Shown piece by piece: positions 3,537 through 53,876 of a DNA stretch of 64,000 bases. Below the pieces are notes generated by a model. It made no database searches, was not told the DNA's origin, and was given only the letters and a program-made list of their open reading frames with translations. The first letter of the stretch is position 1. Each line of letters opens with the position of its first letter. The stretch lies in contig JAUPSS010000002.1 of the NCBI GenBank assembly GCA_040285825.1, forward strand, positions 1,116,001 to 1,180,000, in the 5' to 3' direction. The stretch is from Eukaryota sp. TZLM1-RC (lineage: Eukaryota > Protista > Metamonada: BaSk clade). The position numbers and the translations under genes are program-made.

Positions 3537-4490
3537 AAATCTTTTCAGGAATATTACCATTGAATGATTAGGGAAAGCATCGACTCCCTTTTTCTACTTC
3601 AATTTTTGAAATTTTTTCATTTAATGCAAAACTAGTACAACTATGCATTGTCATTAATAAATCTTCCCAAAAGGCAAATCTTTCAGAAAACTCAATTTTT
3701 GCATTTCTGCATCCACCGATACAAGCACATGAAGTAAGAATTGATGCCTTTGTCAAACTTAAACCGACATAATGTGAACTAAGATAAGCATGATCAGGAA
3801 TTTGGGACACTTTACATCCTGGTAATTGTGACAAGACTTTTGCACGTAATTCATTGAACTTATGAGCCAAAGGCCAAGTGATAAGACGATTTGTAGAGTG
3901 ACATATATGATTGAAATCGGAATTAAAACAAAGTCTTATAAATGTAAATTTGATATGAAAATGAGAACCTTTAAGGGGGTAATTCATGCTAATGAATGAA
4001 TTCAATATTTTAATTCAAATTTAATAGAATTGAATCAAAAACACTTGAACCCATTAATTGCTGGTCGATTTGTTGTTACTTGTAGTATTTAAAAAACAAT
4101 ATTTTATTCAACAACAAATATGCAAAGTATGTAGTATTTACACACATTATTATAAACCATTCAAATTAAAAACAGTTTCTAAAATTTTTTAGGGGAGAGT
4201 AATATTGAACTTGATCCTCAGTATATTGCAAAGTGTTAGAAGGTTCAAGACCTCAGGTTCACTTAGGCCAATGACCAAAACAGCTTTACAAAATCCTCGT
4301 TGTGCTTATTGTTGGATTTCTTCCATCAACATTTAAAAGACAAAATTGTTCCAAAAGTTTTAACAAAAATGGAACTTAGAGGTGATGTCATATAACCTGG
4401 ATTAGATGGAACCTTCATTTTATTGGATGTAATGTCTGTTGATTCTTGTAATGCCTCAAATGACAGGCTTGCTAATTCATTCAATAACTC
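3537..4490. mobile_element. Composite of CRE-like non-LTR retrotransposon fragments (family A thumb region on -, family D endonuclease region on +)
   Basis: The minus strand encodes HFHIKFTFIRLCFNS...HAYLSSHYVGLSLTKASILTSC. The plus strand at ~4375-4480 encodes RGDVI*PGLDGTFILLDVMSVD. The same composite recurs at 42270-43000. Confidence 0.75.
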
Positions 4491-5423: not shown

Positions 5424-7634
5424 CTATATCCTATCAATGAACTTTTCCTCAAATGAACTGCAACATTTTACTTCTGAAAGTGAATTTAGACACTGAGTGG
5501 CGTTAATTCTCTTCATAAGAACATCAAAACTGGTACTTGGAGGGACCAGAAAAGAAATTCCAATCAAAACTGATAAAAGACCATTCCTATGTTGTGGAGT
5601 TAATAATCGAAGACGAAAATTACTGAATGAAGGTGATTCGATAAGTAACAAAAATCGATCTAACAGTTCAAGATGTAGATTAGTTAATTCTTCACTTAAT
5701 TTAGAAATAATTTTCAACGCCAGGGAATAAAAGCCTGAATACATTGAAATAATTAAGCAACAAATAGAATTAAACTTCATCAATTCAAACAAATCACCTA
5801 TTGATTCTTCCTTGGCATTGAACAGATCTATTCTGGTTTGAATCAGATATTTGTTTGACAACAAAGACAAACACAGTAAAGGAACGACATCCTGGGAGAT
5901 AAATGGTTGGAAATTTAACCACTTATCTGTACTAAAAACAGGAATTAATCCAGAAATAATGCTATTAAAAAGATAATTGATCTCTAACACAGTAGAGTTG
6001 CTGATGATATCTAAGAAATCAGTAAACAAAGTGACACTGACGGAATAATAGATTAATATATTACAAATCTCGTCAAAGAAAATACTTTCAAAATGGGTAT
6101 CTTTAGAATCATTACAATACAGAAGCGAATCTAATAATTGAACCAAGTGCAATTTTTGGTTTGGCAAAATAAAACATAAATGAGCTAAAGAACGAATAAG
6201 AGGTGAACAAAAAGATTTAATTGAAAAGAAATGATGACTAATTAAAGAATCTAATATACGAAAACAAAACGGAAAAGGTTTGAAATCATTTGACCTTTCA
6301 AGACTTGTTTCTCCTTTTTGATCCACATCAAAATCTACTGGAGGGGGAAACATTGATAAAATAACATTAAGCATGGAACTAAAAGATACTAAAAGATTTG
6401 GTTTTGTGTTCGAGTTGCATATGAAATCCACAAAACCATCGAATATTAGCGAAAAATCTTCACACAACTCAGCACATTCATAAAACCTTTGTACATTGAT
6501 CAATTTCAGTAAACCACTGAGAAAAAGAGGAAACATTGAGGAAAATGTATAAACGAGGCGATCATCTTTTGATCGAAGAGTTATTAACTGAAAACAATGT
6601 AGCCAACGGCAACCTTCCTTAATCAAAACATATTGATTGGAGGTCAGAAGGTTTAAAATTGTCTTGGACAAACTCTCCCAATCGACAGACTCAAACTGGG
6701 GGGCATTTGACATCGAAACTACTGGTCTTGGAGATTCAAACAAACAACTAGACAAAGGGTCATTAAATTGATTGCTGACGTCATAATTCTGATCCTCTTC
6801 AACAGGCACCAAACTCTTAAACTTACTATACAAACCATCAGTAACAATACCACAAAACGAACAGACTTCATTAAAAGAAACTTCTTGATCGACAAAGCCA
6901 AGAACAAATAACCTTTCCTCAGAAGAAGACGAAGGGGTGGTTGGGTGATGGTCAGATGGAAAGTCCTTGACCACGAGAGAAACTTCATGTAGAAGGGTGT
7001 GGAGAAAAGGAAAAATGTCAATATTGAGACAGTCCAGGATGAACATCAAGAAGCGAAGACAGAAACACCGAGAAGAAGAGAGAGGGAGGTGAAGGGTTTG
7101 GCTAATAAGGGGAATCATGGAGGAAAGAGAGAAATGAGGAGTATTATTCAAGATGATGTCTTTAAAAACTCGATCTAAGTGAAGAGCAGCCTTGATTACC
7201 TCAGGTGAAGTGTCAACAACGCCATTTACTAATGCTTTAAAAATAGTGTAAGAGTAGGGAAGGATATGGTGGTTGATGCTCTTGGAGATGTAAATGATGG
7301 ACTCAAAGCAGGTTAATCGTACCTTGTCGTCTAGGTCATATATTTGGTTTATTATAGGGGTGATGAGTGAAGAAAGATGAGAGTATAGAGCAATTGTGTT
7401 AGGGTTATCACTGAAGCAAGAGCAAATAACGGAAAGTGAAGTCAATGCACATTGGCGATGGAGAACTTCATGTGCAGTGGTATGTTTAGCTACATCACTG
7501 ATAAGTTGTTTTAATTCAGAGTCAGCTTTACATTTAGAGAACAGAGTGTGAATGTACGTAGATAAAGAATTACGTTTATCAGAGCCTTTACTGTACAGAT
7601 TCAACAGACGTGTGAAGGAAAACTGGGTCACCAT
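5424..7634 (-). CDS. VAC14: VAC14 homolog (PIKfyve/Fab1 complex scaffold)
   Basis: 736 aa HEAT-repeat protein with DLDDKVRLTCFESIIYISK, VDTSPEVIKAALHLDRVFKDII and the C-terminal Fig4-binding motif LIESPSFSNFRLRLL...LIGISFLVPPSTSFDVLMKRI. Confidence 0.9.
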   Translation of the reverse strand: MVTQFSFTRLLNLYSKGSDKRNSLSTYIHTLFSKCKADSELKQLISDVAKHTTAHEVLHRQCALTSLSVICSCFSDNPNTIALYSHLSSLITPIINQIYDLDDKVRLTCFESIIYISKSINHHILPYSYTIFKALVNGVVDTSPEVIKAALHLDRVFKDIILNNTPHFSLSSMIPLISQTLHLPLSSSRCFCLRFLMFILDCLNIDIFPFLHTLLHEVSLVVKDFPSDHHPTTPSSSSEERLFVLGFVDQEVSFNEVCSFCGIVTDGLYSKFKSLVPVEEDQNYDVSNQFNDPLSSCLFESPRPVVSMSNAPQFESVDWESLSKTILNLLTSNQYVLIKEGCRWLHCFQLITLRSKDDRLVYTFSSMFPLFLSGLLKLINVQRFYECAELCEDFSLIFDGFVDFICNSNTKPNLLVSFSSMLNVILSMFPPPVDFDVDQKGETSLERSNDFKPFPFCFRILDSLISHHFFSIKSFCSPLIRSLAHLCFILPNQKLHLVQLLDSLLYCNDSKDTHFESIFFDEICNILIYYSVSVTLFTDFLDIISNSTVLEINYLFNSIISGLIPVFSTDKWLNFQPFISQDVVPLLCLSLLSNKYLIQTRIDLFNAKEESIGDLFELMKFNSICCLIISMYSGFYSLALKIISKLSEELTNLHLELLDRFLLLIESPSFSNFRLRLLTPQHRNGLLSVLIGISFLVPPSTSFDVLMKRINATQCLNSLSEVKCCSSFEEKFIDRI

Positions 7635-8030
7635 TCTTACGGATGCTGTCTACAACAATGTAGTAACTTATTACTAGTGAAGTATTCTTGAGACTGATGT
7701 GGAGGGATTGTGTTTTATATGTGGTTTTCAAAAAGATCTTGTTCTGCTTGGCTCTTTGTATGTTTGCTCGTCTATCTCCTCCATGGGCTTCCATCACTGC
7801 AAACATATTCAGTCAAGCAATTCGATCCTTATTCCATAATACAACTTCATGAATTAATGTGTTATGAAATGACATTTATATCAACAAACTTTGATTTAAT
7901 AAGCGTTTATCTCAATTAGACTTACCATTTCACCGAGAATGATGTTTTATATAATATGTTTTCTCCATTGAAAAGAATTCAATGCTGCCAAAATAGTTTT
8001 CTAACAGTTGTTACTAAATTCTGTAATCAA
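7635..8030 (-). mobile_element. Fanzor1 family-1 internally deleted remnant ('ghost'-like): RuvC-III/C-terminus plus right end abutting the VAC14 ATG
   Basis: The minus strand encodes LWNKDRIA*LNMFAVMEAHGGDR, matching L*NRDRNASLNMLAVMEAHLNGGDR at 44455-44530. The terminal 26 nt match 44649-44674 at 23/26 positions. An upstream patch KTILAALNS resembles KATLSQFNS. Confidence 0.8.
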
Positions 8031-13797: not shown

Positions 13798-15329
13798 TTT
13801 ATTAGTAAATTTGATTGTGTACAATATCTTTTAAGTAAAATTATCATTTTTAATTAATTTCATTGTTTCTAACTCGTAATTTTGTTTTCACCTAACTATC
13901 TGCATGCTCTTAGTTTTGTCAAAATAATTTGAATTTCACACATGCTATTCTGAATGAACATATTTTTCCCCGACTGTTTTTATTAGGTTAGCAATAAGGT
14001 TTTTTTACTTCAAATTGAGTATTTAGAGTCAGTATTTTGTGGTGTATAATCAGAATTGTCGTCATCGACAGAGCAGAACAATTAGGAATTTCTCAAGTAG
14101 AATTGTGGAAAAACTCTGTTGCCCATGAAGAATATAGTTGCAGCAGAGTTGGGTTTAAACAAGTGATTGATTAATGGAAGACTGGAATTAAACAACAATC
14201 AACAATAAATGGAACCAAGTACAAGGCTCTCATATCGTTGTAGATTGGTGAGGATTTTTGTTGGAATTTCTAACAACAACATCCAAATTATTTTTTTTAA
14301 AAAAAATAAAAATTATTGTTGTGAACAATGATGAACAAATATACTGTACAATTGGTATCTCAGTTTGTGACCAGTTTCAGATTTTCAATAATACCAACAG
14401 AATCTTGCTCTTGACTGAATCCCTGGATGATACATCAAATCACTCCCTTTGTTAATTACAAATTCACCAAAATATATGTCAATACTTAAAGAAATTTTAC
14501 TTCGAAAAACGTATTAGATGAACTTAAATTCTTAATTCCACTTTTTGTGATAAGTCATCGTCTCCTTTGATGACACAATCACCTCAGAGATAAGTCTTAT
14601 TTATTTTTTATAAGTTATAAGTTATTTATTTATTTGAGGGATTGTGAATGCGTTGTTGATTTGAATTTAAAACTAGGTATGTGGGCTTTTAATGCATTTC
14701 TAAATGTTCTAAAAAACGCTAATCATCACCATGAAGATAAGTGTCCGGAATTGATGAACTATCGATCAATTTTTCACAATAATCCTCACGATTGTGGTTA
14801 TTAAATGTTCGTGGCTAATGGACTTCATGTCAAAATAATTCTCTTTGGTTCATCTCAAGAACTTCACTGTTTTCATTTTTGGTTGGGAGACTTTGTTGTT
14901 CCATAAAAATACAACATGAAATTGGAGATGACTAGATCAAAAATTGCTTTAGTAAACTCAACTTAGTCAAAATGATGCACTGTTTAGATGTATAGTAAGA
15001 GTACGGTTCTATTTAAAAAAAGAGTACAAATTTACTCTTCATCAAATTAGAGAAAATGTTGATTAAAAAATAATTAATTAATTTTAATTGCAATTATCTT
15101 ATTGCTACTGCTTATTTAGAGCTTTTTACCACCCATAACTGTCATTTTCAGAGTTTGACACAAAAGCTGAAAAACAACATAGATGAACTATTAAATTAAT
15201 GTTCTCCGTTTATTTTTTTGTGGCCACAGATAGACTTCCAACATTAAAAGAAGAAAGACTAACGACAACCACTATCCTAATGTACAAGATATAATACAAC
15301 TACTAGAAAAACCTAATCAAGAACAAAAC

Positions 15330-17213
15330 CTAATCAAAAACAAAATCTGTATCAACATGCATACTCATATTGACATTGGTTTCTGCTGTCATTGGCCTCT
15401 CAGCAAACTCTTTTCCTTTATTAAAGTAATTATCCCACAACCGTGATAGCGGAATATCATCTCTATCAAGATCCACAGACTCCAACAATTTAAGTTTTCT
15501 AATATTGCTCTTATCCACCCTTTCCACTTGCGTCCTCAATTGGGCTGTGCTATTCACAGATTCTGGTCTTTCGCTCTCATTAGACAATGGTAGAGGAGGC
15601 CTGGAGGAAGAAGGAATGGCAGTTGAAGGACGACTTTCAGGGAAAACAAAGGTACTGGTCGTATCAATTGACTGTTCCACCCCAACACCATTCTTTTCAA
15701 GTTTTGAAACAAGAGAAAGGTCATGAGGTAATTCTAAATCACTTTCCTCATCTGATTGATTACTTTCTGATTGATTACTTTCTGATTGATTACTTTCCAA
15801 TACTTTTTCCTCCTCCATAGTAGAATTATTTCCCAAAGAGGGTTTATGAATGGGTCGTTCATCTCTTTCATTACGACCAACAGAGGAAGTATTTGAAGAA
15901 GGAGGATGCAATGAGGAAGTGTGTTGAGTGTCAGGAACACGAGTCGATTGTTGGGCTCTTTCAAACAGTTCCTCGACTTTTTTTAAGTAATTCTCCAAAT
16001 CTTGTTTCGTGGCAAATTCCTTCCTTAAATCTTCCGGTGATATTCCACTACTCTCCACCCTGGAATGAGTGGGCTCACTTGGAGGCAGAACACGGACTGG
16101 CTGGGGGTTAGGGTCATTGTGAGTTTCAAGGTCCAAAACAGAATGCTCAGTAACAGGAGAAGAAAAATTATTAAACCCGGATTTGGTAGGTTTTTCAAAA
16201 GTCAAAACAGTAAAGTTGTCTGGTTGAGTTTTAACCCTGGGAGGAGAGCTCTCAATATCTTTTCTTTTGGAAAGTTCCTGTTCGATCTTCTCCTCATATT
16301 CTTTTTCCCTTCGTTTTTGTTCTTCATCTCTTCTTTTCTTTTCTTCCATTTGTTGTTGAAGAATATGGCGTTGTTGCAATTGTTGATTCTTTTGCTGTTC
16401 AAGTTGATGAGGGTCAATGTAACCTCTTCTCAACTCCGACACACCCGACATAAATGCCTTGTTCGGACTTTTGGAAGGCGATGAAGAAAACGAGCTTGGT
16501 TGATTGATTGGTTCTGAATATTGGTTGAAAGAAGGTGGTTGCATGTGATTTGATTGAACATTTGATTGACTCGCTGGTTGAGACTTGGGTTCTGATGGGG
16601 CTCCATTACCTGGTTGTCCAAAAGGATTAAAGTTGGCCATTTCACGTTCTTTTTTAAGTTCATACTCCATTTCCTTTCTTTTAGCTTCCTCTTGAAGTCT
16701 TTTCTTTTCTTCCATTTGCTGTTGAAGAATTAACCGTTGTTGCTGTTGTTGAACCTTTTGTTTTGCAATTTCATTTGGATCAACATGACCTCTAGTGAGT
16801 TCTGTAAGGCCAGCCATGAACTTCTTGTTATTTGAATGTGGTTCAGAAGAAATGGGCTGTGGAGAATGATTAAAATGTAAGGAACTGTGATCAGAATTTA
16901 AAACTTCATTGCGTTGTGGAGATATTGAAGAAGAAGGATCAGTTTGAGGAGGTGACCGAGAAACTTGATCAAGACGAGTAAGATTATTGCCAAAGTTGTC
17001 TTTAATAGGAGCACCATGGCCAGAACGACCAAAAGGTTGGAAGGACATGCTCTCTCGTTCTAGTTTAAGTTCATATTCACGTTCTTTACGACGTTCTTCT
17101 TCCTTTCGCCGTTGTACTTCTTCCATTTGTTTTTGTAGCTCTAGTCGTCTTTGTTCTTGCAGACGACGTTTATTTTCTATAGAGTCATCGCGACCAAGAG
17201 AAGAGAGGAACAT
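15330..17213 (-). CDS. CSPP1/CCDC66-like coiled-coil centrosomal protein
   Basis: Repeated L-Q-x-Q-M-E-E-K-K-R coiled coils, two of them followed by FQPFGRSGHGAPIKDNFGN / FNPFGQPGNGAP, resembling the CSPP1 NPWGKGGGGAPLRD motif. ESNQS x3 repeat at ~15750-15797. Confidence 0.6.
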   Translation of the reverse strand: MFLSSLGRDDSIENKRRLQEQRRLELQKQMEEVQRRKEEERRKEREYELKLERESMSFQPFGRSGHGAPIKDNFGNNLTRLDQVSRSPPQTDPSSSISPQRNEVLNSDHSSLHFNHSPQPISSEPHSNNKKFMAGLTELTRGHVDPNEIAKQKVQQQQQRLILQQQMEEKKRLQEEAKRKEMEYELKKEREMANFNPFGQPGNGAPSEPKSQPASQSNVQSNHMQPPSFNQYSEPINQPSSFSSSPSKSPNKAFMSGVSELRRGYIDPHQLEQQKNQQLQQRHILQQQMEEKKRRDEEQKRREKEYEEKIEQELSKRKDIESSPPRVKTQPDNFTVLTFEKPTKSGFNNFSSPVTEHSVLDLETHNDPNPQPVRVLPPSEPTHSRVESSGISPEDLRKEFATKQDLENYLKKVEELFERAQQSTRVPDTQHTSSLHPPSSNTSSVGRNERDERPIHKPSLGNNSTMEEEKVLESNQSESNQSESNQSDEESDLELPHDLSLVSKLEKNGVGVEQSIDTTSTFVFPESRPSTAIPSSSRPPLPLSNESERPESVNSTAQLRTQVERVDKSNIRKLKLLESVDLDRDDIPLSRLWDNYFNKGKEFAERPMTAETNVNMSMHVDTDFVFD

Positions 17214-17294
17214 TGTTTTTCGAGTGAAAAAGAAAAATACACTTCTTCGCTTTTAAACACACTTTCTGTAAACATAATGCAAATGGTGTGAGTC
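17214..17294. promoter_or_regulatory. 81-bp divergent (bidirectional) promoter region
   Basis: The ATGs of the CSPP1-like gene (-) and CCT7 (+) are 81 bp apart, head-to-head. Confidence 0.6.
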
Positions 17295-18959
17295 ATGCCA
17301 TTGGACTCATCACAGCAACCAGGAATTATTCTTCTTAAGGAGGGAACCGATGACTCGCAAGGTGTTCCCCAAATTGTATCAAATATCGCTGCTTGCTCAG
17401 CTGTGGCGGATGTCGTCAGAACTACTTTGGGTCCTCGAGGTCTAGATAAGCTTATTAGGACTGCTCGTGATCGTACTATCTCTAACGACGGTGCAACTAT
17501 AATGTCTCTTCTCGATGTTGTTCATCCCGCCGGAAAAATGTTGGTCGATATATCTCGATCACAAGATTTTGAACAAGGTGATGGAACAACTTCCGTCGTG
17601 GTTCTTGCTGTCGAACTGATGAAACTCGCCAAGCCCTTCATTGAAGACAAAGTTCATCCTCGCTTCATCACATCTGCTTATAGACTTGCTCTCTCTAAAT
17701 GTTTGGAAAAGATCGAAGAACTTCAAACCACCATGACTGACTCTCAAAAGTTGTTGGAAAAGTGCGCTGCCACGTCAATGTCTAGTAAACTCATTGCTGG
17801 TTACCGTGATTTCTTTGCTCCAATGGCCGTGAATGCTGTTATGCACCTTAAGGATCATGATTATGATCTCTCACTTTTGGGTATAAAAAAGGTACCAGGA
17901 GGTTCAATGGAAGACTCTGTTTTAGTTGATGGAGTGGCCTTTCAAAAAACCTTTTCCTATGCAGGATTCGAACAACAGCCTAAAAAGTTCAAGGATCCCA
18001 AGATTGTGCTACTTAATGTTGAACTTGAGTTGAAGGCCGAAGCCACAAATGCTGAAGTACGTCTATCTGATCCCGATCAGTTTAAGTCTATTGTTGACGC
18101 TGAATGGCAAATCATTTACGACAAACTTGATGCAATCACTGCCTCGGGGGCGAATATTGTGTTATCAATGATGCCGATTGGGGATCTTGCCACTCAATAC
18201 TTTGCTGATCGTGATATTTTCTGTGCTGGTCGAGTTCCCAAGGATGATATGCGAAGGGTATCCACTGCCACGGGAGCTTCTGTTCAAAGCTCATGCAACA
18301 ACCTTTCTTCAGAAGTTTTGGGTACTTGTGAAGTTTTTGAAGAACGTCAGATCGGATCTGAACGTTTTAATCTCTTTTTGGGTGTACCAGAGTCAAAGAC
18401 GGTTACCATCATTCTCAGGGGTGGTGCTAATGAGTTTATTGAAGAAGTTGACCGTTCACTCCATGATGCTATCTGCGTTGTTAAGAGAGCTGCACAGAGT
18501 TCTAATATTGTTGCCGGCGGAGGAGCAATTGAAATGGAACTATCTAAATATCTCCGTGAATTTTCCAAAACTATTCATGGTAAGCAACAACTAATGGTTG
18601 CTGCTTTTGCTCGTGCTCTTGAGGTGGTACCTCGTCAACTCGCTGAAAATGCTGGTTTTGATACTGTTGACGTAATGAATAAGCTTCGACATTATCACCA
18701 TGTTGGAAATACCTGGGAAGGAGTTGATATAGATAATGGTGGAACTTGTGATTGTTACGAGACCTTTGTTTGGGAGCCATCATCTATAAAGGTTAATGTA
18801 CTCGCTGCTGCAACCGAAGCTGCATGTACTATTCTTTCTGTTGATGAAACTATCAAAAATCCAAAGGCGGAGCAAGGTCAACAGCAGCAGCAACCTGTGC
18901 GCGGTCGTGGAAGGGGTAGAGGTCGTGCTCCACGAGTTTTAAGAGGCCGTGGTGGTTAA
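17295..18959 (+). CDS. CCT7: T-complex protein 1 subunit eta
   Basis: [72 protein letters not shown], and an RGRG tail typical of CCT7. Confidence 0.97.
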
Positions 18960-21725: not shown

Positions 21726-23720
21726 TCAATTTAAATTTTCATAAATATTCAACAATTCTGGGGGCAAATCACCTACTTCATCCTCCCAAGCACCATTTAA
21801 TATTGCAAACTTGGTATTCTCTATTTGCTGGTTGACTGAATCGGCACCATCAAAATCATCATTTTCCACAAATATTTGCAATTGACTTTCCAATTCATCT
21901 AGACTTTCTAATAAAGATTTTAAAGAAGCAGATTCTTGAACAACAGAAAAGAATTCCTTCAAAACAGCGGTTATTTGAATAAAGTGATTAAATGAATCAA
22001 ATTCTTCTACAATAAATATAGTTTCCAAGCATTTTGAAAACAATTGATTTCGTACCAAAGAAAAAGCTGAATTGCTATTAATTTCAAGATTTAAGTTTTT
22101 CAAAGAACAATCAACTTCAGTCAAATCATTCCTGAGCCTTTCCAAATCAGAAATTAATTGGTCTCGTGATTGATTCAAATTTTGAAGCTCCTGACTCACA
22201 ACTTTAGCTTCCTTAAATTTTCGCTCCTTTACAAATGAGCTCTTTTGTGTCTGTAATGCTTCAATATTTGAACTGACAGCTGTCAACTTGCAGCTCTGTG
22301 ACGAAATAACCTCGATTAGACCATTTTTCTTATTTTCAAGCATCATAATTTCATTTTTTAAAGCAAAGTGCTCGCTTCCAAGACTCTTGAACCTATCAAC
22401 CAAACTTACCAAGTCCTTACAATTATAAAGTAAGCTGTCAGGAATCACCATGTAGGAGTCATTAAGATCTCGAAGGGTTTCCAAGAACTCAAAATCAATT
22501 GTTTCCAAAATTGAAGGATTATTGGTCTGAAAAGCAGTGGAAATTAAACAAAACAGAGCATAAACACTGGCGATACATGTCTGTGAAAGATTTGAATTCA
22601 AAATAGCATGTTTTTCCGCCAAAAAGTTGTTCAATTTCTTAATCTCAGACTCTATTAATTGCTTTTTTTCCTCACAATGTTTAGCATTTTCCTCTAATTC
22701 AAGCTTTGGAGCCTTTAACAAAGATAATTCAGATTTTACACATTCAATATCATTAGAAACTTCATCAATTGAGGAATTAATTTGGTGTAATTCAGAACAA
22801 AAGGGTTGTTTAGCCAAATCTAAATTACTAAGAGCATTTATCTTCTCCATTTCTGCAATTTTCAATCCTTTTTTGGCTAATTCTACCTGCTTTTCCAACC
22901 AGTCAACCACAGACTGGGAAACTTTTACTTTTCTCTGACATAATTCATAGTACATCCGTTCATCAACAACAGCCTTGTCCATTCTTTCCTCTATACTACC
23001 CAGCTCTTGGTTAAGCTCAGCCTTGCTCTGGTTTAGTAAATGAATCCTTTCTTCTAGTTCAACTTCACCATCAAATGATAGTTGACTGGCTTTGAGGGTC
23101 AATTCTTCTGATTGATTGCCTAATTCGCTTACCTGTGAATGGAAACCTTCAATATACTCCTGAACCTGACCTCCTTCAGCATCCAAGGCCATAAAATCAG
23201 ACTCTAGCTCAAGCAAATCACCAGAATAGTCGTCCAATAACCCACATAATGAATCAACATTGGGAGGATTGCTAATTAAAGCTTGGTACAATGCAGAGGT
23301 GTCTACTGACTTTGCTGGGGGAAGAATTCGAGGGAGTTCAGTAGATGTAAGGGTAGGTTCAGTTGAAAGTTGAGTGTTAGCGATACTAAATGAGGATTCT
23401 TCATGAGCATCAGAATCAACAAAATCAAAGCTTGAAGGTTCGCCATCATTAATGAATGAGAAGGACGGTTCTGGAGAACCACTGCTCTTTTCACTGTGTT
23501 CATAATCAATGCTATCTTCTTGTTGGAAGTCAAGTTCTAATGACTCATTGGCTGCAACTTCATCAACTACAAAGCCGAAGCCATGTGTGGTTGGTTCTTT
23601 AGTGAAGTCATTATCATCATTAACAAAAGAGAAGCCTCCTTCATCATTGTCTGAAGTAAGGTTGGTGTCAGATATTGTTTCTGCAGGTTCTGATAGTTCA
23701 AGTCCAGAGAAGAGAGACAT
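21726..23720 (-). CDS. Acidic coiled-coil protein with UVR-like motifs
   Basis: 664 aa intact ORF with N-terminal SLFSGL and F-S-F-[IV] repeats, and motifs FVKERKFKEAKVVSQELQ and FVENDDFDGADSVNQQIE. Confidence 0.75.
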   Translation of the reverse strand: MSLFSGLELSEPAETISDTNLTSDNDEGGFSFVNDDNDFTKEPTTHGFGFVVDEVAANESLELDFQQEDSIDYEHSEKSSGSPEPSFSFINDGEPSSFDFVDSDAHEESSFSIANTQLSTEPTLTSTELPRILPPAKSVDTSALYQALISNPPNVDSLCGLLDDYSGDLLELESDFMALDAEGGQVQEYIEGFHSQVSELGNQSEELTLKASQLSFDGEVELEERIHLLNQSKAELNQELGSIEERMDKAVVDERMYYELCQRKVKVSQSVVDWLEKQVELAKKGLKIAEMEKINALSNLDLAKQPFCSELHQINSSIDEVSNDIECVKSELSLLKAPKLELEENAKHCEEKKQLIESEIKKLNNFLAEKHAILNSNLSQTCIASVYALFCLISTAFQTNNPSILETIDFEFLETLRDLNDSYMVIPDSLLYNCKDLVSLVDRFKSLGSEHFALKNEIMMLENKKNGLIEVISSQSCKLTAVSSNIEALQTQKSSFVKERKFKEAKVVSQELQNLNQSRDQLISDLERLRNDLTEVDCSLKNLNLEINSNSAFSLVRNQLFSKCLETIFIVEEFDSFNHFIQITAVLKEFFSVVQESASLKSLLESLDELESQLQIFVENDDFDGADSVNQQIENTKFAILNGAWEDEVGDLPPELLNIYENLN

Positions 23721-42269: not shown

Positions 42270-43375
42270 AACGAAGTAAGAATTGATGCCTTTGTCCAAC
42301 CTAAACCGCCATAATGAGGATTAAGATAAGCATGATCAGGAATTTGGGACATTTTACAACCTAGTAATTGTGACAAAACTTTGGCACGTAATTCATTAAA
42401 TTTCTGGGCCAAAGGCCCAGCGATAAGAGGATTTATAGAGGGAAATATATTATTAAAAATGGAATTGAAACAAAGTCTTATAATGGTAAATTTGATATGA
42501 AAATGAGGACTTTTAAGGGGGTAATTCATGCCAATGAATGGAATCAATGCAATAATTCAAATTTAATAGAATTGAATCACAAACACTTGAATCCATTAAT
42601 TGCTGGTCGACTTGTTGTTGATACTTGTAGTGTTTACACAAATTATTATAAACCATGCAAATTCAACACAGTTTCTAAAATTTTATTAGGGGAGAGTAAA
42701 ATTGAACTTGATCCTCAGTATATTGCACAGTGTTAGAAGGTTCATGAAGCTGATCCCTTCTCAGATATTCCCTTAGTCCAAAGAAGAACTCTAGTCGGAG
42801 TTTATTGTCTGAGGGATACAGATTTAACCATGAAAATTATTTAATTTTTCTCTTACACCTTTTTGTTCCATAAGTTTTAACAAAAAAAGGAATTAGAGGT
42901 GATTTCATATTACCTGGATTAGATGAAACCATCATTTTCTTGGATTTAAAGTCTGTTGATTCTTGTGCCTCAAATGGAAGTCTTGCTAGTTCTGAAGTTC
43001 ATAATCCTCTTTTAAATGCTGAAAATTTCAAAACCAAAAAATACAATGAACGTTTGTCCAAATTGTTCAGTCAATAGCATGCAAAATACAATTTGTATCC
43101 ATTTGTATTTTCTTTACTTGGTTCACTTGCTCCAACGGCTATACGGTTTTTGGCAGATTTTGAACTGATTGTAAAGGGAAGAACTAACAGAAATTTTAAC
43201 AGATTGTTTTGGCAAAATAGAATTCTGTTTTCTATTTTTAAGGACATGTTAAAAACAGTTTCTGATGCTTTGCTTTCTCTTGGATCTCACTATGGGAGAG
43301 TTGCATCTAATTGTTTTGTTTTGGGAAAGATGGATTATTTAGAAGTTGATTTATAAGTTTTCTAATAAATAAATG
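42270..43375. mobile_element. Second copy of the A(-)/D(+) composite, running to the family D 3' end
   Basis: Shares the junction and linker with 3720-4480. The plus strand encodes RGDFILPGLDETIIFLD...YPFVFSLLGSLAPTAIRFLADF...FWQNRILFSIFK. Confidence 0.8.
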
Positions 43376-43414
43376 TTATTTAAAAAGGGATAAAAAATAT
43401 TTTGTATTACACAA

Positions 43415-44674
43415 TTGAAAAAATTGAATATGCGTTTCAAGAGACACATTCAAGAGCTTTCCTGTGATTACTTGGATCGGTTTGTTGATGTTTTCTACAA
43501 TGTTAAGAGAAACAATAAGGTTCTGAGAAAGCAAGATAAGACAAACTTCTCATCATTTATCAAGTTAAATCTCTCTTTTTCAAAGGATGTAGGGTTATTG
43601 AGGGCAAAACATCTACAATGAGCAATAGTCCCATCAATTATTTAGCTTTTGATTAATGGCCATCCCCCTCATTTACTTCCAACTACTTCTAAAAAGGAAA
43701 AATATTCACAATTTGTTTTGTTTTGTCAAAATCAAATTTGTATTGAAGAGCATTGTTACATTAAAAATTGTCAGAAGCCGACCAAACTCTTTCATGCTCT
43801 GCCTTTGAAAAATTCATTGGATTTAAACAGCAGTATAATTAATCAAATGACTGAAAGAACAATTAGTTTATTAAGAGGTGAAATTCCTCAAGACATCAAT
43901 ATTCCCCAAAAAATTAATTACTCATTCAACTTGAGAAATAATGATCACACGACTAAATCTGTATTAGAATGGAAAGCAACGTTATCCCAATTCAATTCCA
44001 AACGCTGCAGGTTTGATAGATTTATGGCAAATATTAAACAGAAGAATTATGTGAATAGTATCGTTGGTGAAGTCTATCATCAAAAAATATTTAGGAAACT
44101 AAGATGGTGGGCTGAGATTAATCGCACAAGATCTGAAGCAAAAATGATTCAGAGATTTAAATCAATAAATGATGATCCCAGCCAAGTAGTTATTGGAATT
44201 GGAGACTGGGAACAACGAAAACACATGAAATTCAAAGAACCTATCAAAGGAAAAGGTTTGAGAATTTTATTCAAAAAAAACTGGTTATAAGGTCTTTTTG
44301 ATTGATGAGTTTCGAACCAGTTGTTGTTGTTTCAATTGCAAGAAAGCGGAGAAAACAGTTTAAACATTCTGGTGGTGCAGAAATCCTAGGCCATCGAAGA
44401 GGCATGAGATGTCTATTCGTCACGGGCTTACCATGTGTAAATCAAGCGAAAGTTTGTGAAACAGAGACCGAAATGCTTCGCTGAATATGTTGGCAGTGAT
44501 GGAAGCACATCTAAACGGTGGAGATAGAATGGAATACCTACAGAGAGTCAAGGTTGATGAAAGTTCAAAGAAAATGGTATCAAGGAGAAAAACTTCCACT
44601 TCACAAAAACTCAGTCCCTCAACATCGGTTTAAAAAGGACACTTATTTCATTGTTATAGACATCATCTGTAAGA
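43415..44674 (+). mobile_element. Fanzor1 family-1 pseudogene (RuvC-I region missing) with right end abutting the kelch gene ATG
   Basis: YHQKIFRKLRWWAEINRTRSEAKMIQRF, VVIGIGDWEQRKHMKFKEPIKGKGLR, frameshift, GYKVFLIDEFRTSCCCFNC (RuvC-II E + Zn finger), RHGLTMC and NRDRNASLNM (RuvC-III). Stop at 44631-44633. Confidence 0.9.
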
Positions 44675-46138
44675 ATGACTTCGCCGACACCAATTGATCT
44701 TAATCGTCTTACCTTGGATACTAAAACACTTATAAATGTGCCACAATGGAACCGTAAGAACATATTGCACTCAAGTAACCCTTCTTATACACAATGTACA
44801 TTTTACTCAGATATATTGATCCTACACGATAAGTCAATGACTAGAGTATCCCAATGTGGCTCAATTAACACAATCACATTCACAAACTCTCCTCCAAGAA
44901 GGAGGTTTGGTTCTATGTCTCAGGCCAACTCATTAGTTTATCTTTTTGGCGGGTTAGATGAGAATAACCGCCCCTTAAGAGATCTTTGGTGTATCCGAAT
45001 TCACGATGATCCTCAACACGCTCATCAGTGGACAAAAGTTCGTTCCCAAGGTGATTTACCTCCTCCAAAGTTTGGGGCCTTGTTATCTTCATTTCAGCAT
45101 TATTTGATTCTATTTGGAGGAGCTGGTCAAGATTCCAGTAGTCACGATTCTTTGTTCATCCTCAACACCCAATCAAATCTATGGCTACGAAGCCTTGTGC
45201 CCCCAAATATAAAGGCCATATCAAAATGGCCATCTGCTCGAGCGTTAGCTTCTCATTTCACAGTCAATGGTTTTCTCTATCTGTTTGGTGGATGTTCTTG
45301 TCTACCTCCGAATGCAGATCCTGCATCAGAGATTACTTCGGCTAGACTGTGGGGACGAACAAATAATGAGCTCTGGAGACTGCGATTGTCCAGTATTTGT
45401 TGTAATGACTCCATGGAGCCCCCCACAGGAAGATGGGAGAAAATTAGTATATCAGGTGCCGTTCCTTCACCAAGAGCCGGTGCCTGTGTTTCTCCCTTAC
45501 CTTTTGAGGGCAAAGTCTTGATCATGGGAGGTTTTGCAACCTTCCCTCGGTCCTCTTGCGCTGATTCTTTCTTGTTGGACTGCTACAGCCACATGTCATC
45601 CCCTCTTCGTTGCAGGGGCATAGAAAGACCCCCTCACAGATCGTTGACTACTGTTGCCACATCTTCTCTCGGATTTGTTTTATGTGGAGGTTTGAGTACT
45701 TCTGGACCTTGTTCTGATGTCTACTCTCTCGATTTTATCGACTCATCATCTACTCCTTGTACACCAGTCTCTGCTACACCAACGTCTTCTGTTAAAGAGA
45801 TATACAGTCCTCGTTCTCTTTGCTCTGAACCCAATAGTGCAAGATCCAGTTTTAATGGACTTCCATCGTTAAAGGAGGTTGTTCCTAACGTCAAGTCTCC
45901 ATTTTCTAGACCTTGTACCTCTGAAGTTTCTTCTCCGACGAGCCCTAGGTTGACCAAAGCTCAACAACCGTTATCCACTAATACTCAACAAAGTATTTCG
46001 TTGTTGAAATCATTATCATCTGTTGCAGAAACTTGTTTTGATTCTCCGACCCCTCGGATTCAACAAGCCATTTCTTATCTGAAAAGTTCTATTTCTATTA
46101 TTGTTGAAGAATTGGAAAAGCAGAATAGTGGAAATTAA
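44675..46138 (+). CDS. Kelch-repeat protein
   Basis: Repeats of PPRRRFGSM..VYLFGG, PPPKFGA..LILFGG, PSARALA..LYLFGG and PSPRAGA..VLIMGG, followed by a Ser/Pro-rich tail. Confidence 0.9.
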   Translation: MTSPTPIDLNRLTLDTKTLINVPQWNRKNILHSSNPSYTQCTFYSDILILHDKSMTRVSQCGSINTITFTNSPPRRRFGSMSQANSLVYLFGGLDENNRPLRDLWCIRIHDDPQHAHQWTKVRSQGDLPPPKFGALLSSFQHYLILFGGAGQDSSSHDSLFILNTQSNLWLRSLVPPNIKAISKWPSARALASHFTVNGFLYLFGGCSCLPPNADPASEITSARLWGRTNNELWRLRLSSICCNDSMEPPTGRWEKISISGAVPSPRAGACVSPLPFEGKVLIMGGFATFPRSSCADSFLLDCYSHMSSPLRCRGIERPPHRSLTTVATSSLGFVLCGGLSTSGPCSDVYSLDFIDSSSTPCTPVSATPTSSVKEIYSPRSLCSEPNSARSSFNGLPSLKEVVPNVKSPFSRPCTSEVSSPTSPRLTKAQQPLSTNTQQSISLLKSLSSVAETCFDSPTPRIQQAISYLKSSISIIVEELEKQNSGN

Positions 46139-52085: not shown

Positions 52086-53876
52086 ATGGATACGTGCCTG
52101 TTCTCTTTATCAGTTCTTTAAGCAGCCAGTTTCTGATTATATTGATGGACTGCTTGCTGGCCAAAATTTTTGCTGTACGCTTCCCTGAAGACAGTCGTTT
52201 TCTGACTCAACCACAATTATGGATCCAGTTTCTTGACCTTGTGGCGGTATCTGAGCCAAAAGTCAGACATCCATTCAACAGACCTGACAAAGGTCATGTG
52301 TATGAGAAGCTCCAGCTATCCTCTACATCATGGCCGTTTGCTGTCTTGTTCATGTCGAGAAAAGGTCGTAATCATGCGCTACCCACTAGTAGGCCTCTCC
52401 AACAACTAGTGGATGCAAAGTGCCGCCAGTTGCAAGGCAACTACCAGCAGCTCCCGGTCTTGTGACGTGGAAGCTCAACTTCTTCCGCTCGTATGCAGTA
52501 GGTCATAATTCCCCTGCACCAGCCTCTTATGCTGGCTCTGTACTTCACAACAATACGAACTTTCGGGAAGAGTGACCCTTAATCAAGGGAATAGTACCTA
52601 CATTTTCCGTCGCAGATTAATAATCCAAAACAACCTCGAGCCAGCCTTTCCGCATACCTTTAGACGACAGAGACTTACCCCTATTTCTAGTTTGAAGCCT
52701 GCTTTTGTTCCCTTTTCCACATTGGTTCTCAACCATTTTATCTCCAAAACACAACACAAACAATTTTGAAAAACCCATATTTATTGTTTGAAACAAAAGC
52801 TAATGACTGCGCCGTGTCTTCTAATGGTGATAGTGTCCGTATAACTTTCTCACCCCACCCAAAAGCAACACGAGTGAGACTGTCTGCCTTGGCTGATTAG
52901 AACTCCAGAGGGGAACTTGATTACTACGAAACCACTGGGAATAGAAAACAAACCCTGCAAGCCAAGGTTGAACAGTCAAGACTTCGCCAGAAACCTAAAG
53001 CTACTGAGTGGTAGGCACATGATGATGAAACGGAAATGGTGTTCTGGGCTATCGACCCCAACCACTCAAATCTATGTGGTTCCAGCATTAGAACACGTTC
53101 AGGGCCGACCGTTTCCAATATCTTCTTTGTACCAAAGTATCGAAAAGTCAATCTTTCCGTTTCACTGACACATCAATAGATGTTCATGACGTGCAGAAAT
53201 TGAACCATTATCTGCTTGAAATATCAACTAACGGTGACTATAAGGTCTATGAAGGTATCAACAAAAAACGATCATTGCTGTAGCAGCAATTACATCTGAG
53301 TGCTCGAAAAGCATTGATGAGAAACACACTTGACTTCTTTATAAGAAAACGGAAAAGATTCAGCTCAATTATCAACAAAGTGAAAAAATTTGCAAACGGT
53401 CGAGAAGTAAAGGTGTAGTTTGGCAATGGAGGTAGTGGTCCATCATGTCAAAAAGTGAAAACACCACGCAAGGCGTTTCTCAAGTTGCTTCAAGATCGGA
53501 GATGAATACATGGCATCTGCAAAGGTGAACTGCTGCAAGATGCTACACCAAAAGATCTATCAAGAAGTTGATGGTGAAGTTAAAGTTCACAACACCTATT
53601 TCAGTTGTCCCGAAGGTAATCCAGTTTGGTGTAAAGACATTTCTGCATCACTAAATCAGCTAGAAATTTCAATTAGTGGGCACTATTATGGAACCAGATT
53701 AGAAGCGTTCCAGAGACCACAAAGAAACTAGCTTCAAAGCTACGTATTGTTCTAGAGGAGAAATGGGCTCACTGAGATTGGTGGCCAATTATTCGCGGAT
53801 TCTAGAACGTCAGTGGACGATCTCACCAAGAATGACAGTTCTTGGAATAAGTTTGAAAACCATACTAGTAGACAAA
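52086..53876 (+). mobile_element. Fanzor1 family-2 pseudogene, copy B, plus ~145-nt 3' non-coding end (candidate omegaRNA)
   Basis: All three RuvC acidic residues are visible in broken frames: WAIDPNHSNL (~53050), V*FGNGGSG..KTPRKAFLKLL, DEYMASAKVNCC (~53502) and SCPEGNPVWCKDISASLN (~53635). Stop at 53731. Confidence 0.8.

Follow-up and report, generated by a model that had tools for sequence, protein, structure and literature searches.

Fanzor1 elements in a metamonad genome dock directly before the start codons of unrelated host genes

A family of Fanzor1 elements (family A) in the genome of Eukaryota sp. TZLM1-RC docks base-precisely, and in the sense orientation, directly before the start codons of unrelated host genes. 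The strain is one that we take to be Skoliomonas litria, a free-living metamonad flagellate of soda lakes. The window analysed is a stretch of 64,000 nt from contig JAUPSS010000002.1 of assembly GCA_040285825.1; the genus Skoliomonas is described in PMC11603281. The protein is of a kind already known (Fanzor1) and the insertion signature has precedent. What has no counterpart in the literature searched is the base-precise, oriented targeting of native start codons, together with a family-specific complementary arm in the element end.

The window holds two family-A right ends (Table 1), recognized by a 26-nt motif that occurs there exactly twice, at 44649-44674 (+) and 7660-7635 (-), where none is expected (100 shuffles). 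The first-pass annotation of this DNA had described these copies as 23/26 identical, followed immediately by ATG (44675 and 7634) and diverging beyond it, and as homologous from RuvC-III through the C-terminus to the 3′ end; both descriptions hold, the homology amounting to 64% over 225 columns. The remnant beside VAC14 is supported from 7839 to 7635, while the part that had been assigned to it at 7840-8030, and sequence further upstream, aligns no better than shuffles. Both host reading frames are open, as had been claimed, and supported by Pfam (kelch, 487 aa; VAC14, 736 aa). The latter has the domains Vac14_Fab1_bd (residues 64-159) and Vac14_Fig4_bd (residues 581-712), and gave no sequence match in the PDB. 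The main window copy is a dead Fanzor1. It is frameshifted near 44275, with a stop at 44631-44633; another repeat (42848-43381) severs its exonuclease piece from the rest; and a deletion of about 615 nt after 43823 (gap 1616-2232 on the comparison map) has taken out RuvC-I.

TABLE 1 Coordinates of element parts, element ends, target duplications and host genes. Positions lacking a locus number are in the window; L-numbers are comparison loci, followed after the colon by the position within the locus.
Feature	Position	Strand	Remarks
Element 5′ piece, probable PolB-type 3′-5′ exonuclease fragment	42498..42847	+	85-91% identity to L004/L005 copies
Decayed Fanzor1 N-terminal part	43382..43823	+	73-80% identity to other copies
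Fanzor1 C-terminal pseudogene	43818..44633	+	RuvC-II (DEFRTS), zinc finger, RuvC-III (RD-N)
Motif homologous to 5′ hairpin of putative giant-virus Fanzor1 omegaRNA	44611..44630	+	L002/L005 form 18/20 against viral L012
Terminal hairpin	44648..44678	+	left arm 44648-44660, loop 44661-44665, right arm 44666-44678
Target tetranucleotide AATG, host-derived	44674..44677	+	AATG after 16/16 ends; duplications elsewhere begin at -3 to -1
Host kelch-repeat gene, intact	44675..46138	+	
Older diverged right-end remnant, same family	7635..7839	-	RuvC-III to terminal arm
Host VAC14 gene, intact	5424..7634	-	ATG directly after remnant; Pfam
Probable exonuclease-domain copies	L005:8540-9325; L004:6470-7352; window 42498-42847, 3956-4369		last has no right end
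Target duplication	L002:11419		10 nt, adjoins truncation point; empirical null 0.0008
Target duplication	L010:18917		10 nt; empirical null 0.003
Target duplication	L002:1240		9 nt; empirical null 0.01
Target duplication	L006:12904		10 nt, in register after older end; second copy entered older copy's ATG
Family C right end	L004:14792	+	Vps35
Family C right end	L009:6863	-	eIF3g
Family C right end	L005:20639	-	transferase
Family C right end	L003:16923	+	WD40 gene
Family B	window 25947-23728 (-); L005:2737-~355 (-); L090; GEM-RC1 L089, L091		651-aa open copy
Family D	window ~52400-53857 (+); L006:1-301		ends 19 nt before 53877 and 54 nt before L006:356

Docking was counted in about 255 kb of this one genome. 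Seven comparison loci were retrieved via Fanzor proteins, blind to the neighbouring genes, and an eighth was chosen because the annotated protein there reads through into a host gene. Right ends were located with a profile that left out the last four bases and the ATG. The first-pass annotation had predicted precise insertion at initiation codons and proposed tabulating the 3′ flanks of all copies. The tabulation bears the prediction out: the profile search found 16 family-A right ends in the sample, AATG comes next in all 16, and 13 open a host reading frame in the sense orientation. All seven protein-retrieved loci end at a co-oriented start, the right end being split from the Fanzor ORF by a later insertion in two of them, and the eighth likewise ends at a host start. 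Called starts make up 49 of the 1907 AATGs outside coding sequence (2.6%), which gives a binomial P of ~1e-19. In a separate sample (two runs), at least 13 contigs leave the alignment at 44677-44679, and read depth falls to zero beyond the ATG.

The docked genes include a deaminase, an Rpp14/Pop5-like gene, ApbA, an acyltransferase, an XPG-like gene, a Tudor gene, an LRR gene and a beta-eliminating lyase; spliced host genes (Vps35 and the lyase) were assigned from the first exon. The starts look native, in that position 1 of the ApbA profile falls on residue 7 and position 2 of the acyltransferase profile on residue 11. At L009:10001-11712 the annotated protein P0182 runs from a broken Fanzor through the element end into a host gene that is presumably Akirin-like, judged by a C-terminal motif; the read-through protein is probably an annotation artefact. 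There are three exceptions among the 16 ends. The end at L006:9698 is an older one that was pushed away from its ATG when a second copy inserted there. The gene called at L005:5753 begins 4 nt ahead of the AATG and in a different frame; the ATG of this UCH-like gene was formed inside the variable bases of the element end, and is possibly a rescued start. The sole unexplained end, L009:9503, opens just three codons, and lies (L009:9465-9509) inside or beside another insertion.

It might be supposed that the short motif AATG(A) suffices, and that copies insert anywhere, with selection purging those in coding sequence and keeping those at gene starts. The AATG requirement is indeed real (16/16), and at two of the ends the neighbouring gene does not begin with that ATG. 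However, non-coding DNA makes up 54% of the sample. Its AATGs comprise 1858 non-starts and 49 starts, and other decayed repeats, similar in age, abound in it, so that neutral intergenic copies should dominate; motif and purging together cannot explain the docking. Nor does the end show any detectable extra constraint. This explanation is largely refuted, and we consider it very improbable. Still less can be said for the idea that the 26-nt motif is a general host promoter element with an incidental link to Fanzor. The motif is present at the starts of many unrelated genes, but even in a sample enriched for Fanzor only about 14 of 83 starts have it, the remaining ones being without it, and it is nearly always continuous with Fanzor-derived sequence; its continuity with the Fanzor ORF refutes this idea, to which we give practically no weight.

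The origin of the ATG is indicated by target duplications. At four loci a direct repeat of the start region, 9-10 bp long and spanning the ATG, is found on the 5′ side of the insertion (Table 1), beginning at -3 to -1 and ending at +7 or +8, with 11-140 nt of filler between the 5′ repeat and the element. Since the duplications span the ATG, it was present in the target and is host-derived, which contradicts the suggestion that the element supplies the ATG itself. Two further candidates were left uncounted: L009:11269, with a null of 0.09, and L004:14792, which lies inside another gene. It is by their position that the duplications stand out: a position-blind search of 3.3 kb upstream for repeats was not significant against control genes (3/13 vs 3/61, P 0.06). 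The two window loci and most others show no duplication, and in most copies, the window pair among them, the 5′ end has been overwritten. No empty allele of a docked site was found. The element had also been thought to stop at one fixed base, but the three bases before A(-1) vary, with 33% mismatch against about 5% around them. They are part element and part host, and their variation tracks copy age; the end of the window element falls between 44670 and 44673.

The family-A end folds into a stem of 13 pairs, with the host A-ATG-A completing its right arm (fold z -3.97). Over 14 copies, 84% of the stem cells are paired, compared to 35-48% in slid controls; no compensatory changes were found in these 14 hairpins. 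The arm predicts an A after the ATG, and an A is found there at 8 of 11 young sites, compared with 12 of 63 background genes (P 2e-4). A second Fanzor family, family C, linked to a Fanzor remnant at L005, has all four of its right ends flush at GATGTC starts (ATGTC P 1e-3); its arm complements ATGTCA at three of the four sites, with one mismatch at the fourth. The subterminal arm complementary to the start region is thus specific to each of families A and C.

Families B and D served as internal controls. They lie mostly co-oriented upstream of genes and are not flush, at distances of 7, 19, 54, 63 and ~630 nt, one of these cases being in the related GEM-RC1 genome. Family B falls in one cluster of 82 proteins, and has a defined left end and a terminal hairpin. 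Its window copy, which lacks the outer part of the hairpin, ends 7 nt short of the ATG at 23720 and has a 7-nt arm complementary to it; other family-B copies are not flush. The host ATG after the window family-D copy is probably 53877, the mechanical ORF start at 53763 being inside the element. Another old Fanzor remnant, at L007:15613-15387 (-), lies about 130 nt upstream of a co-oriented start at 15255.

The mapped part of the family-A element is about 3.1 kb and contains no transposase. Its 3′ end is fixed, while the 5′ ends all differ, being variably truncated and often accompanied by filler. The first-pass annotation had called for a search for intact copies, left ends and the mobilising transposase; none was found in the ~255 kb, nor were a RepHel/Rep partner sharing the ends or asymmetric terminal inverted repeats. 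The copy that reaches furthest 5′ (L004, ~6470) has no duplication, nor did the 5′ ends show the right end in inverted form, though the true left end may lie outside the sample. The terminal inverted repeats and fixed left end of the TIR/DDE type were not seen in the family-A copies. The IS200/IS605 type does not fit either, given the presence of duplications and the lack of TnpA in the mapped 3.1 kb. The Helitron2/CRe-type one-ended signature is seen, with a fixed 3′ end bearing a hairpin, 5′ truncation and target duplication. At L004:11181-11818 and L006:10962-12799, two unrelated insertions are found a few bases apart in an A-rich stretch about 100 nt before the family-A right end.

Two of these features, 5′ truncation and variable duplication, are also those of non-LTR elements, and element RNA could have been retroposed by a resident CRE-like non-LTR reverse transcriptase (TPRT), the nicked target annealing to AAUG in a read-through transcript of the donor. 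The filler and the 9-10-bp duplications would fit, non-LTR-like repeats are abundant, and other insertions inside Fanzor copies carry direct repeats of 7-11 nt; in two loci target bases -3/-2 equal the donor end. There is no poly(A) or LINE-shared 3′ tail, and the end matches no other repeat in the comparison loci. We regard retroposition as possible, if doubtful.

The protein has the features of Fanzor1, namely the RuvC triad with its glutamate six residues before the zinc finger, a C4 finger and the RD motif (broken reading frames were searched piecewise or with X replacing stops). RuvC-I, deleted in the window copy, is present in P0026, P0029 and P0015, and the relative P0026 matches the solved Fanzor1 structures 9cf0 (E 1.6e-22) and 8gkh. 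The catalytic D, E and D are retained in family A, although every protein copy examined is broken, and the protein set holds no full-length family-A protein up to 801 aa. The reading frame at L005 is open across the junction between an exonuclease-like domain and the Fanzor N-terminus, and the Fanzor ORF is probably fused in frame to a PolB-type 3′-5′ exonuclease domain. The identity of this domain is based on motifs and a weak match to Pol delta (E 0.68); the fragment has no Pfam match.

The closest proteins outside this genome belong to the giant-virus Fanzor1 clade, to which the C-terminal half is 53-58% identical. These relatives were recovered with an alignment query; the single query P0026 gave no match in the viral scan. 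With SpuFz1, Parasitella Fz1 and the giant-virus clade, family A shares the RuvC D/E/D, the zinc finger and a Fanzor1-type N-terminus. The giant-virus Fanzor1 elements at comparison loci L011-L088 are 2.2-5 kb long, bounded by perfect terminal inverted repeats of 26 bp, and share a conserved internal hairpin loop. The viral elements do not dock flush at starts. Family A lacks such repeats; its 3′ end is short, it probably carries the exonuclease fusion, and it docks at the ATG. Both have the internal 5′ hairpin motif (18/20 bases) and a stem closed at the tip. Among the best 120 matches, none to family A came from other Skoliomonas genomes. A pattern scan of metagenomes gave one chance match, on a bacterial contig, with no ATG next.

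The viral omegaRNA 5′ hairpin motif sits 60 nt upstream of the docking point, and from this likeness 44611-44630 is probably the start of the omegaRNA scaffold. The scaffold would probably end at the ATG, and codons 2-7 of the host gene are a plausible putative guide. The terminal stem takes in AATG(A), and published Fanzor1 scaffolds contain the 3′ duplication (PMC13565253; compare PMC10711439). The right end matches no Rfam family. The motif at 44623-44633 was considered as the tip of an ancestral viral repeat, which would imply a fixed, element-encoded guide, and dropped because it matches the internal 5′ hairpin better.

A guide of this kind invites the explanation that the Fanzor nuclease cuts gene starts in an RNA-guided manner, the break being repaired by copying the donor end. 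Such homing is established for TnpB/Fanzor (PMC13565253), the catalytic residues are retained, and no transposase is visible. Against it, a cis guide made from the codons of one gene cannot find another, and the filled allele keeps AATG and protospacer and would be cut too. In addition, the published Fanzor cut positions, on the non-target strand and 14-19 nt away from the TAM (PMC10432273), do not fit the -1 and +8 of the duplication, so Fanzor cleavage is an unlikely source of it. The RNA-guided targeting proposed in the first-pass annotation is at most putative, and we think homing unlikely.

The same annotation suggested domesticated gene control. According to this suggestion the ends would be promoters or RNA-guided regulators kept by the host, comparable to TldRs, which are TnpB-family proteins at host promoter regions and in that respect partly alike (10.1101/2023.11.30.569447; PMC13565253). 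Remnants of 90-220 nt do persist at essential genes, with the native promoter displaced. However, the short copies that carry duplications (L002:1240, L010:18917) were already short when they inserted, and the copies form a star-like tree, as expected of a selfish burst. Each TldR is a single domesticated gene whose catalysis has been lost, while here there are many decayed mobile copies, all broken where examined, that keep catalytic residues. The last 60 nt diverge by 5.7% compared to 4.2% for the ORF, and since conservation of the end does not exceed that of the dead ORF, domestication is unsupported; we rate it as somewhat less likely even than homing.

Our preferred reading, which we consider fairly probable, is that a transposase-less Fanzor1 element is copied 3′-end-first into gene starts, the site being chosen by pairing and by access at the transcription start. 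The element would be non-autonomous, its mobilising enzyme acting in trans. The geometry of fixed 3′ end and duplication implies that the fixed end of the element becomes joined to a 3′ end of the template strand at -1 to -3. The template strand of the host gene would thus be nicked 1-3 nt before the ATG, and the nicked 3′ end, the complement of AATG, would pair with the donor end and be joined to or extended along the element. Copying would proceed toward the 5′ end of the element and halt at random; the duplication would result from a second nick, placed 7-8 nt inside the coding sequence. Pairing with AATG(A) may set register and orientation. Pairing alone is too unspecific, so access at the transcription start must add a second tier, which would be DNA opened there, presumably with very short 5′UTRs. 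Elsewhere in the window, at 17213-17295, a gap of only 81 bp separates two divergent genes, one for a CCT subunit and the other an unknown gene of 627 aa, a spacing consistent with very short leaders. The coding sequence would be spared and the native promoter shifted upstream; by geometry the element end would be forced to act as the new leader/promoter. A codon guide would put an active nuclease at risk of cutting the filled locus that it came from, and one may speculate that this is why every examined copy is broken.

Among enzymes, a one-ended HUH/rolling-circle reaction like that of CRe-1/2/3 is tentatively and slightly favoured over the resident non-LTR reverse transcriptase, because the CRe elements, which likewise carry Fanzor1, show the same signature. 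The accessible parts of Bao and Jurka 2013 (PMC3627910) describe CRe-1/2/3 as non-autonomous Helitron2-type Fanzor1 elements of Chlamydomonas. They share with family A the fixed 3′ end, variable 5′ truncation, filler after the 5′ duplication and a tetranucleotide target rule, and have duplications of 7-19 bp, against 9-10 bp here. They differ in targeting TTTT, which lies upstream of the duplication, and in having an autonomous Helitron partner; those parts report no link to gene starts. MCi-2 of Mucor circinelloides (same parts of PMC3627910) and Replitron-1 (Craig 2023, PMC10288648) resemble family A in lacking terminal inverted repeats, in having variable 5′ or fuzzy right ends, and in duplications that start with a fixed motif; Replitron-1 insertion is also orientation-specific. 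Their motifs are different, no start-codon specificity is reported for them in these sources (for MCi-2, in the parts accessible), and Replitron-1 encodes its own Rep.

The pairing code and the preference for gene starts each have a counterpart elsewhere. IS608 uses a Y1 transposase and, as far as is known, makes no duplication and has no gene-start preference. In the accessible part of PMC5934647, IS608/IS200-IS605 elements choose their target by base pairing, and family A likewise has a subterminal sequence complementary to, and apparently specifying, a short target, with a family-specific code. Mu and P elements (PMC7337890) strongly prefer Pol II gene starts, as here, but by DDE cut-and-paste and with peaks tens of bases wide, while family A is base-precise, oriented and tied to the ATG. 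A literature search, with most subscription papers outside its reach, turned up neither a Fanzor nor a transposon that targets start codons.

The mobility of Fanzors that lack a transposase and the function of their guides in eukaryotes are open questions (PMC10432273, PMC13565253). Families A and C, with a base-precise, oriented start-codon rule and a visible pairing code, give sharp predictions on target choice, nicks and guide content. It is conceivable, though we think it unlikely, that the arm of the element RNA pairs with the AUG region of a short-leader host mRNA (or with the opened non-template strand), so that host transcripts would guide, in trans, the Fanzor complex and the integrating enzyme to their own start codon. 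If true, this would be a natural RNA-programmed, gene-sparing integration, retargetable via the 6-7-nt arm (AATGA in family A, ATGTCA in family C). The targeting principle is of interest for promoter-proximal integration tools. For the organism, the preferred reading would mean that a selfish element has rewritten the leader/promoter region of a sizeable share of genes, essential ones included, with the coding sequence untouched.
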